Shown: positions 961-52,156, counted from the first letter of the stretch. The stretch is DNA of 64,000 bases from Epiperipatus broadwayi (GCA_028023455.1 JAQFVV010000007.1:12090001-12154000); one strand, 5' to 3'. Numbers and translations: made by a program. The notes: generated by a model from the letters alone, not told the origin.

Positions 961-2199
961 ATAGATTTCAAATATAGATTAACCTTGTAGAAGTCTTCTG
1001 GTATATATTGGTAATATTGTAGTTGAAAATAGTGGTTATATATATATGTTAAAATGAAGATATGAATTTTTTAATATGTATTTTATATATATATATACAA
1101 AAAAAAATTCATGGAAAACAATTATAAAGATCAAGTTCATTGATACATAATTAACACTACTGTGGCAATGTTCCTCTGGATTATAGATGCCATTAAATAG
1201 CTAGAGAATGTTATTGTTTTAAAAAAAATTGTAGATGCACTGCAGCAACATAAAATAAGAGGAATGATTCATTCAATGGAAACCAAAAGTATTTTCTAAA
1301 AAAAAAATATGATAAAGTGAAAAAGAGGCTGATAACATAGATGAAAAAAAATCAACATAAAGTCAACAAGTAATTTTGATTAATGGGTTTTGATTTTTTT
1401 TCATATGGAGAATAATTTATGTATATCAATGACCATATGTGTTGATACAGTCTACTTTTTTAAGGATTATGATGGCATTTCTAATTTTTCATTAATGGAA
1501 AGTGCCTTATCTAGATAGGACTCTGGCATTTACATATCATATTCAGATTAATATTATTAGTTTGGAATGAGAGTGATGATGATGACTGCTACTTTGCACT
1601 ATTAGCACATTAATTTTTTCTAATACTGATGAGTTAATTGCTAATACTTCACATAAGACAGACCTTACAGGCTCCGCATTTTAAAAGTAAAAAATCCTTA
1701 AGCCTGGTCAGAAAGTCTCCAAATTATCCCATATCAGTATACATCCAGCACTAGTTCATTTTATATAAGGAACACAACTTAAAGATTGATTTTTTTCTTC
1801 TTCTGTTGTTTAGAACCGTAACCTTGAATAATAAACTTGAGTTATAAGTTTCAGAATTAAAGCTTGAATCTAGTTATCAACAATTACATGAATTTCTGAA
1901 GCAATTAAACATGCCATTATTGTTTGAACATATGATTTAGAGCATTAATAGGCTGATAGAATCAAATCCTAAAAGCTCCTGTATTGTTATAAAAGTTCTT
2001 AAGCTTACAACACATTCAATTAATTATGTTTATGATGAACTATTATATCTGATCTGCTATTATCATATTTGTATATCATTCAACTGTGGCAAATCTGAAG
2101 CTTAAGGTATTCAGATCATGCCCATGCCTATCACTTTGGCATTAAATTTCTTATGAACTCCTAAGCTATAATGTCATTCAGTCTTTTTTTTTAATGTGA

Positions 2200-2650
2200 T
2201 CTTTTGAACAATCGTGCAAAGTAAGGACTGCACTACATAAATATTATTCATTATTGGATAATTTATAGTCTAGTGAATGACTAATAAAAATTAATATACT
2301 TCCACTAAGTGAATTGTGCCATAGTTGTGAGGCAGCAAGTTTGATACTTATCAAATAAAGTGTAGTAGTTTGCTATCTATATATATCAAACAATGATATA
2401 AAGATATGTGTATGTGATTGTGGTCTGGTCCAAATAATGAATGCTGGTTCGGCATCAAATGTCATGTTGAAGATCATCTTTTTCACGTGTCTTTGGTCAT
2501 ATGTTTCTGATTACATTTCTCTACAAAATGTTAAAAATAGATAGAAGCCAGTCTCTACCTTACATGAGCGTGGTGTAGTAAAAATTGCGCTACATGAATA
2601 TTATTCATTATTGGATAATCTCTACTCTAGTGAATATCTAATAAAAGTTA
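2200..2650 (-). repeat. Family C satellite-like repeat, about 1.2 units (period ~357 bp)
   Basis: A ~60-bp block (CTACAT.AATATTATTCATTATTGGATAAT...TCTAGTGAAT..CTAATAAAA) occurs at 2231 and 2588. It is the reverse complement of the unit tandemly repeated at 50310-51170. Confidence 0.75.
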
Positions 2651-3364
2651 TTAATATGATCATACATTTACTTTTTTTTTTGGCAATAAAATCAAAATAA
2701 CTAATAGTAAATGTTTCCAAAAAAAGATATCTTTTTAATTAAAAAAAAAAAAAATTAAAAGTATTTAATTTCAAATATTTTTTCATCTACGTAAATAAAA
2801 GATCTAACTTATACGAACTGTTAAGTGTAGCAATACGTAAATATATATATATTATGACACAGTCGATATAAACTCAACCTTTAGCTTGAGAAAACAAGAG
2901 AGACAAGTATTTTCATTTTCACATAAGTGAAGCGTATAAGGCAAGTAAGAAAATTCTCTCTCCCCCGCCCCACTACCCTTCTAAGTACTCAAGTAAAAAG
3001 AACAAGGTTAACTTTTAATATGGGAGAACCTTTCTTTTTTAATAAAATCCAGCAATTTGACATTAAGGTTATGAAAAGAAAGTAAATGAAACAGTAGAAA
3101 GCAGATTCATCAAAACCTCAGAAGAATAGTTTTATTCTTCTGCTTCAAGGAAAGTTTATTTAAAATGTTTAAAAAGGTAAAAAGAAAAAAAAGAGGGGGA
3201 TAAACTCAAGTAAACATTTTAAAAATTAATATATATATGATAGTATAAATTAGAACAAATGTAAGTAGATTTATATAAAATAAAAATATTTAATAGGTGT
3301 TGTCAGGTTAATGTTGACTCCTGGCGATGATGTGGTATTATGAATATTTAAAATAGTTTGTGGC

Positions 3365-3720: not shown

Positions 3721-3930
3721 GCTACTCAGTGATTTATTTTTTTATCTGTTAAAACTTTCAATTATATATCCATTTATTACAAATTTTTTTCTATACATGC
3801 ATAAATGACGGTACAATACAGTTGTAGGAATTTTATGGGTCTTTGTGAATAAGTAATTAATAAAAATAGACTTAAAAGTAGGTACCTTAGTGAGCTTTAT
3901 ACATCCATGATTATCATACTGATCATGAAA

Positions 3931-3944
3931 TATAGTTTGATGAT
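3931..3944 (+). repeat. Left target-site-duplication-like direct repeat TATAGTTTGATGAT
   Basis: Identical 14-mer at 5651-5664; the bases outside both copies differ. Confidence 0.9.
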
Positions 3945-5653
3945 TACGATAGAATGACAGCCTGTTAAGCTAAATTGCGCAGACGCTATGAGAATGTTGT
4001 TAATAAATGAATACCTTCGAATAACCACATGATATAATATTTATATAAGAGTAAAAGGAATCCCTCTTACTCCTACAACTCAAATGTTTATATATGAGCA
4101 AATCTAAAGTAGTTGTAACGAAGGCGTGACTACATAATAGTCACTTTAAATTACTATATATAATGTCTGTATGAATGGCGCGAATGAAATTTTCTAGAAT
4201 TTACTGAACGCCACTCCAAACGAAACTAAATCATATACGAATAAGCATTTATTTTATAACGTCTTGCGTGCGATTATAATTACGATAGAATGACAGCCTG
4301 TTAAGCTAAATTGCGCAGACGCTGTGAGAATGTTGTTAATAAATGAATACCTTCGAACAACCACATGATATAGTATTTATATAAGAGTAAAAGGAATCCC
4401 TCTTACTCCTACAACTCAAATGTTTAAATATGAGCAAATCTAAAGTAGTTGTAACGAAGGCATGACTACATAATAGTCACTTTAAATTACTATATATAAT
4501 GTCTGTATGAATGGCGCGAATGAAATTTTCTAGAATTTACTGAACGCCACTCCAAACGAAACTAAATCATATACGAATAAGCATTTATTTTATAACGTCT
4601 TGCGTGCGATTATAATTACGATAGAATGACAGCCTGTTAAGCTAAATTGCGCAGACGCTGTGAGAATGTTGTTAATAAATGAATACCTTCGAACAACCAC
4701 ATTCGTGCCATTCATACAGACATTATATATAGTAATTTAAAGTGACTATTATGTAGTCACGCCTTCGTTACAACTACTTTAGATTTGCTCATATATAAAC
4801 ATTTGAGTTGTAGGAGTAAGAGGGATTCCTTTTACTCTTATATAAATACTATATCATGTGGTTGTTCGAAGGTATTCATTTATTAACAACATTCTCACAG
4901 TGTCTGCGCAATTTAGCTTAACAGGCTGTCATTCTATCGTAATTATAATCGCATGCAAGACGTTATAAAATAAATGCTTATTCGTATATGATTTAGTTTC
5001 ATTTGGAGTGGCGTTCAGTAAATTCTAGAAAATTTCATTCGCGCCATTCATACAGACATTATATATAGTAATTTAAAGTGACTATTATGTAGTCACGCCT
5101 TCGTTACAACTACTTTAGATTTGCTCATATATAAACATTTGAGTTGTAGGAGTAAGAGGGATTCCTTTTACTCTTATATAAATACTATATCATGTGGTTG
5201 TTCGATGGTATTCATTTATTAACAACATTCTCACAGCGTCTGCGCAATTTAGCTTAACAGGCTGTCATTCTATCGTAATTATAATCGCACGCAAGACGTT
5301 ATAAAATAAATGCTTATTCGTATATGATTTAGTTTCGTTTGGAGTGGCGTTCAGTAAATTCTAGAAAATTTTATTCACGCCATTTATACAGACATTATAT
5401 ATAGTAATTTAAAGTGACTATTATGTAGTCACGCCTTCGTTACAACTACTTTAGATTTGCTCATATATAAACATTTGAGTTGTAGGAGTAAGAGGGATTC
5501 CTTTTACTCTTATATAAATACTATATCATGTGGTTGTTCAAAGGTATTCATTTATTAACAATGTTCTCACAGCGTCTGCGCAATTTAGCTTAACAGGCTG
5601 TCATTCTATCGTAATTATAATCGCACGCAAGACATTATAAAATAAATGCTTAT
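3943..5653. mobile_element. Young 336-bp-unit foldback array (about 2.3 units forward, then about 2.8 units inverted) inserted as one piece
   Basis: ATTACGAT at 3943/4279/4615 (period 336); inverted units start at 4700/5036/5372 (period 336); units nearly identical and CpG-rich; flanked by a 14-bp direct repeat. Confidence 0.9.
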
Positions 5654-5664
5654 AGTTTGATGAT
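5651..5664 (+). repeat. Right target-site-duplication-like direct repeat TATAGTTTGATGAT
   Basis: Identical to 3931-3944. Confidence 0.9.
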
Positions 5665-5789
5665 GTAAATGTTATCTTTTACAAATGCAATGAAATTAAA
5701 CAAGGAACTGATAGACACTTTTTGATTAATCATTTTGAAAACCTTTAACTGGTTATTGTTTTTCATTATAGGTAGTTATTTGTATATCA

Positions 5790-6350
5790 AATGATCACCA
5801 TTTTATATGCTTGCACAAGCTGTTAATAACAATATCAAACTCTCCATACAGTAGTGCCACACACTTTGTAATGAAATAGATGCAGGAAGGTTTTTGCATA
5901 AAATCCCTATCTAGTGCCTATACATCCAATATCCCCAGACTAGTTTCTAACTTGTGGATTTCATCAGGGATGAACCTTGGAATTGAGATCCTAAGATGTA
6001 GGTGCAGTGCTCTCAAATCCATGGTTCCTCACTGATGAAAGCCACAAGTTAGAAACTAGTCTGGGAATGTTGGATGTGTAGACATTAGATAGGGATTTTA
6101 TGCATAAACCTGTCTGCATCCATTGTTTACAAAGGTTTCAACAAGGTGACACTACTATATGGAGAATTTGAGATTCTAAGATGCAGATGCAGTACTCTCA
6201 AATCCATGGTCCCTCACTGATGAAAGCCACAAGCTAGAAACTAGTCTGGGAATGTTGGATGCGTAGTCATTAGATAGGGATTTTATGCATAAACCTGTCT
6301 GCATCCATTTTTCACAAAGGTTTGCACATGGTGGTACTACTATATGGAGA
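5790..6350. repeat. Family A foldback with tandem duplication of the right arm
   Basis: Left arm CTCCATACAGTAGTGCC...CCCCAGACTAGTTTCTAACTTGTGG (5843-5985) is inverted at 6017-6170, and the right arm is repeated at about 6172-6350. Confidence 0.9.
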
Positions 6351-8348
6351 AGTTTATTTATTTATTTATAAGTGTGTTTTGTTAGAAATTTTCATCTAAG
6401 ACGTTCTGTTATAGTCTGATAAAAAATTTGCAATTTTTTTAAATTTTGCTAGTATTTGTCTTGTTATATTTTTATTGTATTTCAATTATATTTATTAGTA
6501 CTCAAATAAATATTAAAGCATAACCTCTGCCTATGCATAACACTTTATTATTTATTCTTACTGGAACTATTTAAAAGCTATTTTATATTTATATGTGTGT
6601 ATAATATAAAAGTCAATGTTTTTTTGCAAATAAAATATGAAAATAAAGTTTTCATGTTATTTATATATATATCATTGTTAGTTTGGATGTTTCATTCAGA
6701 TTTTTTTACCACCATTTGATTAAGTAAAAAGTAATTGTAAACAGTGCTGCTGCATGGGTAAGTGATGCCTTTGTGCATGGCAAATTTTAGTCCTCCTTCC
6801 CATTTTATGAAATAAAATTTTATAAATTAGACATTTTTCTCCAGTACTTTCACAAGAAAAAAGTCAAAATATGACTTTAGGCATTTAATGTGTTTGGTAA
6901 ATACCTTACATGTTTTATTCATATATTTCTATAAAATAAACTCAAAGATTAAAACACATACATGCTAAAGTAAAACAAATTAATGTTTAAAATATATTTG
7001 TTGAAACAATAATTAAATAATTCCTTAAAACAAATATTTTTATTTAGTAAGGCAAGTAAAAATTTGTTGAATTTGAATTTTTTTTTTTTATCAAAAGTTT
7101 TCATATTATTTTTGACAAACTTGCAAAATTGCTAATAGAGATAGAAAATATCTGCAAATAAGATATTATTTTTTTAAATATCGAAGTGTTTTTATCATAT
7201 TTAAAAGAAAACAGCATTTCTCCCTCACACACACATATAAAAACATTACACTACCCTATTCCCCTTTTCAGGTCTGCATATTAAAAATATTTACAGCCAG
7301 AGTATAATTCTCTGGAATGTTTTTACTCTGAGATCTATCCCACATAATGAGAAGAAAAGGAAGTCCATCTTATCTCCATTATGTTTTTTGAAGCACAATA
7401 ATTGTAAAAACTGATGTAATTCTTTGACTTCTTTATCAATATTTAGATCAACTTTAACAGACATTTTAATAATTTATTAAAAGTAGTTAAAAATAATTCT
7501 TGTTTGTTTGAAAACCCATTCAAAATCTCTTATGTGTAAATTTATCCACACTTTCTAAAAACCAAGGTATATTCCTTCAATAATAAAATACACTATTATT
7601 TATTTTTTTACAAGTAATTCCACAATTAATAACTATAATTTATTGTATATATAATTTGATATTTTAAATTTTCATACATTATTTATTGATGTAATTTTTA
7701 CATTTTTTAGAATCATCAACCTGGTTTAATTTTAAATAACATGGCTGATATAACACTTTCATTCCAACAGCATCAATTTGTTAAAAAAATCATTTGTTTT
7801 AAAAATTCATTAGTTACATTTAATTCAGAACCAGTCACACATAACTTGTATATGTTTTCTATTAACATACATAACTTGTTTACATTTTCTATTGACTAAA
7901 TAGTTTCTCTTATTTTTGTTCAATAATAAAATATTTACACTAGTTTATTATTTAATTTTTGACACTTATTAAGGGGGTGATTTTTTGGTGAAAGTGTATC
8001 TGAGGATGATACATTTTTTTCAGAGCTTCAAAATGAAAATCAGAAAAAAAAAGTTTTTTGCCGGAATGAAAACCAGAATGGAAAAAAAATAATGTTTTGA
8101 AGTTCTGTTTTTTTTTTTTTTTTAGAATGTGCTTACAAATTGGTGTTGCTTTTTTTATAAGGGCAGTTTATAAGATACGAATTGTGGAAGACATTTTATA
8201 TGACTACTATTAAATTATCTCAGCTCCCTCTAGTATTACAATTTATCCATATAGCTTTACAAAATATTTATTAAATTGCAATTATTAAATTACTATATGA
8301 AGTATATATCACATGTCTCCATTTCTTTTTTAAGCTTGTAAAATATAA

Positions 8349-51836: not shown

Positions 51837-52156
51837 AAATAAAGACCATTGTTTTCCTGAAGAATTGTGATGATGGTGTTCTAGGGTATTTTTATATTGG
51901 GCTATTTTTATAATCTAATATACGTATTGGATGTCTTTAGAAAAATTTAACTTTATTTAAATACTTCAAATACATTCAACTGTTAGTAATAGCACATCAA
52001 GCAGAAACACTGTGCATATACTAACCTGTTTGATATGCTATTACTAACAGTTGAATGTATTTGAAATATTTAAATAAAGTTAAATTTTTCTACAGCCAAT
52101 CAATATACATATTAAATGGTGGAAATAGCCGAATATAAAAATGCAAATAAAGACCA
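51837..52156. mobile_element. Family D foldback flanked by a 12-bp direct repeat AAATAAAGACCA
   Basis: TAGAAAAATTTAACTTTATTTAAATACTTCAAATACATTCAACTGTTAGTAATAGCA is inverted at 52030-52093; the direct repeat is at 51837-51848 and 52145-52156 (14/15 identical if extended). Confidence 0.85.

Follow-up and report, generated by a model that had tools for sequence, protein, structure and literature searches.

The foldback at 3931-5664 of an Epiperipatus broadwayi sequence window is an ordinary copy of an abundant, dispersed 336-bp family with a Penelope-like insertion footprint

The foldback described here lies in a 64,000-nucleotide stretch of Epiperipatus broadwayi DNA (GCA_028023455.1 JAQFVV010000007.1:12090001-12154000, hereafter the window) and is an ordinary copy of an abundant non-autonomous family that carries the published footprint of Penelope-like elements (PLEs), not the product of a one-off event. 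We consider it very probable that the element belongs to a young, dispersed, non-coding and hammerhead-free family of 336-nt units and that it was inserted as a passenger by a PLE RT/GIY-YIG enzyme. A first-pass annotation of the same DNA had proposed instead that a satellite transcript was captured at this site by twin priming, plausibly through an RTE enzyme.

Analysis of the window with Tandem Repeats Finder revealed a period of 336 at 3943-4702 (2.3 copies, 98% matches) and again at 4700-5653 (2.8 copies, 97% matches), the latter corresponding to 2.84 inverted units when the one-sided tail is included. A repeat search of the window identified inverted arms of 763 nt at 3940-4702 and 4856-5618 that were 98% complementary, together with the exact 14-nt direct repeat that brackets the element (Table 1). 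The forward and inverted units, the exact 14-bp TSD and the CAT junction reported earlier are therefore all present in the sequence, and microhomology was seen at the inversion junction as well as at both outer ends. Also borne out were two further early observations, namely that the left and right outer ends of the window copy differ in unit position (1 versus ∼300) and that poly(A) is absent; neither element end has a simple-repeat tail. A consensus of the unit, built from window 3945-5653 and 20 other loci, contained 14 CpG compared to 8.8 expected, and thus the unit shows no CpG depletion; the genome is ∼27% GC. Folding of the putative RNA sense gave z = -4.3.

Table 1. Coordinates of the foldback and its host repeat in the window
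Feature	Position	Strand	Remarks
TSD, left copy TATAGTTTGATGAT	3931..3944	.	exact repeat of 5651-5664; single homologue in four paralogous sites
Left arm, 2.26 units of 336 bp	3945..4702	- (putative RNA sense)	99-100% identity to family consensus
"Short" fixed end, unit position 1, TACGATAG	3945		outer end of left arm
Inversion junction, 3-nt microhomology CAT	4700..4702	.	forward arm ends at unit position 86; inverted arm begins at 242
Right arm, 2.72 inverted units	4700..5613	+ (putative RNA sense)	98-99% identity to consensus
One-sided 37-nt "tail", unit positions 336 down to 300	5614..5650	+	right arm continues beyond the short-end position
TSD, right copy	5651..5664	.	exact repeat of 3931-3944
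Older interspersed repeat, left part	3855..3930	.	7 diverged paralogues, 74-79% identity
Older interspersed repeat, right part	5665..5740	.	contiguous with left part in L064, L065, L066, L068

An old interspersed repeat, represented elsewhere by diverged paralogues, supplies the final 90 nt of the left flank. This allowed an empty-site comparison, for which the two flanks were joined through a single 14-mer and aligned to four of these paralogues. L064, L065, L066 and L068 each spanned the join without gaps at 71-78% identity, and in all four a single homologue of the 14-mer was followed directly by the homologue of the right flank. Because the four paralogous empty sites carry a single 14-mer, the 1.7-kb block is a true insertion and the 14-mer a true TSD. 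The view that the foldback entered as one unit with a 14-bp TSD is upheld by this comparison, and we read the whole block as one insertion event. An assembly chimera is an unlikely source of the inversion because 19 independent loci show this architecture and are flanked by matching duplications. The host repeat of the foldback extends over ∼165 nt or more and has at least seven paralogues elsewhere in the genome at 71-79% identity.

No short Logan contig spanned an insertion end or the inversion with 31 nt on each side, and a joint that would omit 3945-5664 was likewise absent from those listed. In the "RNA?" runs, for which it is uncertain whether the short contigs derive from RNA or DNA, repeat proportions resembled those of the DNA run. 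Contigs from a second organism (runs X7/X8) that fell on window 4088-4894 matched the 336-bp unit at 0-9 mismatches, so that a related species may share the family. The DNA run also showed that window 5825-6351 is a very high-copy repeat, with a summed contig depth in the millions, 20-40× that of the 336-bp unit. This repeat comprises two tandem copies of 185 bp (5983-6351) and 90-nt inverted arms (5899-5988 and 6011-6100), and many different internal joints occur in the read contigs.

A search of the species' own 5.6-Gb assembly with one 336-bp unit returned at least 1862 first-look candidate matches, of which 40 were scored. A satellite would occur as long head-to-tail arrays at few loci, and what was found was a set of listed loci that were all short and dispersed; no long array of the unit was present among the 40 scored candidates of at least 1862, and the longest arm held fewer than four units. 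The forward-then-inverted order was seen at at least 35 listed loci and the reverse order at none of those listed, with the opposed units situated within 0.5-2 kb of one another. At a few of the listed loci the matches were on one strand only.

We analyzed 20 further loci with their flanks alongside the window copy, and all 21 have the forward-then-inverted layout. TSDs and ends were scored for 20 copies, consisting of the window copy and 19 of the fetched loci, with the atypical locus L046 left unscored. A direct repeat brackets every one of the 20 scored copies; in 17 of them the longest exact match measures 13-14 bp, and lengths across the set run from 10 to 15. Among the 20 loci other than the window copy, a flanking duplication of 10-15 bp is found at 19; taken together with the four empty sites, this recurrence excludes a chance origin for the 14-nt repeat. 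The element ends are equally regular. In 19/20 copies one end, termed short, falls between unit positions -1 and +8 (mode 1-2), and the other, termed long, lies at 299-302 in 14 copies and at 288-296 in five (n = 20). The exception, L031, starts at an atypical internal position. These results contradict the initial impression of arbitrary ends, since 19 of the 20 copies share the same two end positions, ∼1 and ∼300. The extension of ∼37 nt that separates the two end types, here called the tail, is present at exactly one end in 19/20 TSD-flanked copies, and no copy (0/20) has two short or two long ends. If the end types were independent and equally frequent, the chance of finding no like-ended copy would be about 2 in a million.

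The interior of the element is variable. The inversion point and the arm lengths are unique to each copy, and no two of the 21 are alike internally. Microhomology of at least 2 nt was found at 10 of the 17 junctions that could be scored exactly (at least 3 nt at seven), and a few filler bases were present at three. An earlier calculation that ∼90 nt of the unit are missing between the arms of the window copy is arithmetically reproducible (94 nt from unit position 242 to the next position 1), but the gap is meaningless, given that each copy has its own junction positions.

Two observations concern divergent members of this collection. Locus L046 (G000:C6354:2007300-2012900) contains, at approximately 2553-3050, a forward arm of 1.4 units and an inverted arm of ∼22 nt, and its 15-nt direct repeat AAAATATTATAATTT is offset by 15 nt from the short end; this locus may represent a complex or aborted insertion. 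Older relatives of the unit, 71-77% identical, are located near two young copies (L042:5283-5889 and L049:1758-2012), and one of them is likewise forward-then-inverted. The existence of these relatives indicates that the family has diverged subfamilies.

We assessed the sequence history of the family by using 53 full-length units. Pairwise divergence was 1.9% for units of the same arm and also for units of different loci, and 2.05% for units in opposite arms of a copy; units differed from the consensus by ∼1.1%, with variants that were mostly singletons. As judged from these values, the 336-bp units form a star phylogeny from one homogeneous master sequence, and all units of all copies were essentially the same sequence at the time of insertion. 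A star phylogeny from one master disfavors transcripts of a heterogeneous satellite array as the source and fits repeated copying of a single short template. The proposal of a captured satellite transcript is not sustained by these data: the family is dispersed, with at least 1862 candidates, the 40 that were scored include no long array, and the units trace to one master.

This genome is very rich in PLE RT/GIY-YIG genes, which leave the same footprint as the 336-bp family. The GIY-YIG model PF01541 yielded 10,242 candidates, of which 150 were scored and all 150 exceeded the cut-off, with open frames of up to 901 aa. When nearby opposite-strand GIY-YIG pairs were counted among the matches listed, the 3′ ends pointed outward in 20/20, which equals the polarity of the 336-bp family. 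One such frame, L061, displays RT motifs (e.g., RYIDD) upstream of a GIY-YIG domain into which a Cys pair is inserted, and the ESM Atlas clusters nearest to it carry HTH_animal, RVT_1 and GIY-YIG. Pfam RVT_1 gave no match in this frame, of which only the GIY-YIG part was recognized; the designation of L061 as a PLE rests on the visible RT motifs, the GIY-YIG match and the Atlas neighbors.

The most direct parallel to the 336-bp family is L054 (G000:C6351:2386734-2390000), a coding PLE 3′ fragment whose insertion took the form of a foldback. The two arms, at 934-1945 and 2007-3021, are ∼100% complementary, and it is flanked by a 12-bp TSD, TTGAGCAATTAA, with a 46-nt extension on one side only. 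The near-complete identity of the arms indicates very recent PLE activity in this genome. Comparison of the TSDs of the 336-bp family (13-14 bp) with those of coding PLEs (12 bp) is based on this one coding copy. A second small foldback, unrelated to the 336-bp family, is present within the window at 51837-52156, with arms (51888-52004 and 52026-52142) that are 86% complementary, a 12-bp TSD, AAATAAAGACCA, and an extension of 39 nt confined to the left side. Its footprint is likewise of the Penelope type, in a different family.

Searches for coding or RNA features gave the following results. No ORF of at least 180 aa occurs in the whole window, and a tRNA scan detected no tRNA-like part in the element. 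Rfam at E up to 10 over 3800-5800 returned no hammerhead and one spurious miRNA-hairpin match, which arose from the inverted repeat itself, and Rfam at the gathering score returned nothing across the whole window. The hammerhead core CUGANGA was absent from both strands of the 336-bp unit, even when one mismatch was allowed. In blastn comparisons, the unit had no significant similarity to 12 sampled GIY-YIG/PLE loci. In contrast to PLEs, the element thus has no ORF, no hammerhead and no detectable similarity to the 12 PLE loci sampled.

A hammerhead ribozyme is carried by canonical PLEs with a C-terminal EN and by animal retrozymes. To our knowledge, the Naiad and Chlamys PLEs lack one. The 336-bp family resembles the animal retrozymes in its short non-coding unit of the same size class, its tandem layout and its presumed PLE dependence, whereas the hammerhead that defines them is missing from the 336-bp unit. 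Animal non-LTR retrozymes have been described as tandem 170-400-nt repeats with type I hammerheads and argued to be non-autonomous PLE sequences (bioRxiv 10.64898/2026.07.22.740005). Another counterpart is provided by MRC1 of Chlamydomonas and other non-autonomous elements of the Chlamys type (PMC8557442), which are non-coding PLE passengers, as proposed for the 336-bp family, and which, as here, have no canonical hammerheads and form multicopy head-to-tail insertions (PMC8557442). The Chlamys elements differ in that they belong to another PLE clade (N-terminal EN) in another kingdom, and in that they have 3′ ends in common with known autonomous families (PMC8557442), whereas the 336-bp unit showed no significant similarity to the 12 PLE loci that were sampled.

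The footprint of the 336-bp family matches PLE insertions in several features. Craig et al. (2021; PMC8557442) described PLE insertions as partial tandems, often with an adjacent inverted 5′-truncated copy, and noted a PLE "tail" of 30-40 bp, often at one end only. Frangieh et al. (2024; PMC11167929) worked with a purified PLE protein and demonstrated cleavage and extension on both strands of the target, with RT starting at two adjacent internal RNA sites whose spacing equals the genomic tail, a signature called unique to PLEs. The 336-bp family has the same head-to-head inverted copies with 3′ ends outward, the same head-to-tail partial tandems and flanking TSD, and the same one-end extension (37 nt here compared to 30-40 bp; PMC8557442, PMC11167929). 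The two RT start sites of PLEs, ∼37 nt apart here, and the use of both target strands likewise have putative equivalents. In one respect the present family is more regular, since its tail is strictly one-sided (19/20), whereas that of PLEs is "often" so.

These similarities are consistent with the following sequence of events, which assumes an RNA intermediate. A PLE RT/EN would nick both target strands 13-14 bp apart, and both 3′-OH ends would prime cDNA synthesis on the 336-nt family RNA, whose sense, if the coding PLEs are a guide, would correspond to the plus strand in the right arm. The first start would be at a fixed internal site, unit position ∼1, and the second would be ∼37 nt further 3′ on the RNA, at position ∼300, so as to generate the one-sided tail. 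Each RT would copy several unit lengths via re-initiation or template jumping and thereby produce the tandem units. The two same-sense cDNAs would meet at an arbitrary point, pair through a microhomology of 1-4 nt and serve as templates for one another. The outcome would be a head-to-head foldback with independent arm lengths and a unique center for each insertion, and gap repair would create the TSD.

Two other insertion mechanisms deserve weighing against the proposed PLE-mediated insertion. The first is the twin priming of a satellite transcript in trans by an L1-like or RTE LINE, with one priming event at the 3′ end and one at a random internal site. In L1 twin priming, both target strands prime and an inversion with junction microhomology arises inside one TSD; the second priming site is random and internal, the 3′ end has poly(A), and a minority of insertions are inverted. 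The 336-bp family has a TSD in the LINE range, an inversion with microhomology at its junction and no TIR, and RTE fragments are present in the window according to the first-pass annotation. However, both outer ends are fixed across the family, where a variable inner priming point is predicted, and inversion is not confined to a minority but affects practically all copies (at least 35 listed loci). The TSD length is nearly constant at 13-14 bp, neither end possesses poly(A) or a simple-repeat tail, no satellite source array was found among the 40 scored candidates, and the window is without an ORF of at least 180 aa. Neither that window ORF scan nor inspection of the element ends provided a link to an RTE enzyme. 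The part of the earlier proposal that retains its value is the priming of cDNA from both target strands, which fits the head-to-head form with microhomology; its classical L1/RTE version, largely refuted by the fixed ends, is in our estimation very improbable.

The second mechanism is movement by a transposase of an FB-like foldback DNA transposon, the long terminal inverted repeats of which would consist of 336-bp tandem subrepeats, with the variable centers arising after insertion from palindrome instability or unequal exchange. Drosophila FB elements have inverted arms of tandem subrepeats and variable arm length, and long palindromes are known for center deletions with microhomology, so that fixed outer ends combined with variable centers and arm lengths would suit this explanation. 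The first-pass annotation had singled out fixed symmetric termini as the mark of such a TIR element. The termini are indeed fixed throughout the family, but they are asymmetric, with one arm ∼37 nt longer in 19/20 copies, and no TIR is present; FB elements, by comparison, have symmetric ends and a 9-bp TSD, whereas the TSD here is 13-14 bp and, with its range of 10-15, not of one fixed length. We know of no DNA transposon superfamily that such a TSD fits. No two of the 21 copies share an internal structure, no transposase-bearing family member was encountered among the copies seen, and the footprint is precisely that of a coding PLE in the same genome. We therefore give this mechanism, too, very little credence. 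A DNA-level accident, in which replication fold-back yielded a palindromic extrachromosomal repeat fragment that then became trapped in a staggered double-strand break, could account for a single locus with microhomology at its junction and both ends, but is scarcely conceivable in view of the family survey, which refutes it because independent accidents could not yield concordant polarity, end positions and TSD length across hundreds of loci.

Within the preferred PLE-mediated reading, one property of the 336-bp family goes beyond the published scheme. No strand difference in start-site use was observed in vitro (PMC11167929), and the model of Frangieh et al. (PMC11167929) does not predict that the two end sites are used strictly one per end, as they are in this family. 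That each insertion has a single tail suggests that, in a given complex, each strand is primed at a different one of the two start sites. A tentative extension, which we regard as possible though rather doubtful, is that the one-sided tail and the 13-14-bp stagger reflect a dimeric PLE complex whose protomers sit on a single RNA, with one start site per strand, and that a passenger unrelated in sequence is recognized through its structure. Recognition by RNA structure rather than by a common 3′ sequence would be implied because the passenger is unlike the sampled PLEs. If true, protomers positioned side by side on one RNA would represent a coordination that is unseen in the published in vitro system.

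The consequence of these results is mainly one of clean-up, in that an apparently rare capture of a satellite transcript becomes a routine insertion of an abundant retroelement family. Annotators are warned that such families can be mis-called as satellites or as foldback DNA transposons. The family is also moderately useful as a natural in vivo record of PLE integration, with two fixed start sites ∼37 nt apart of which each end uses one, a nick stagger of 13-14 bp and arms joined by microhomology; this record is in accord with recent in vitro work on PLEs and makes it slightly more precise.
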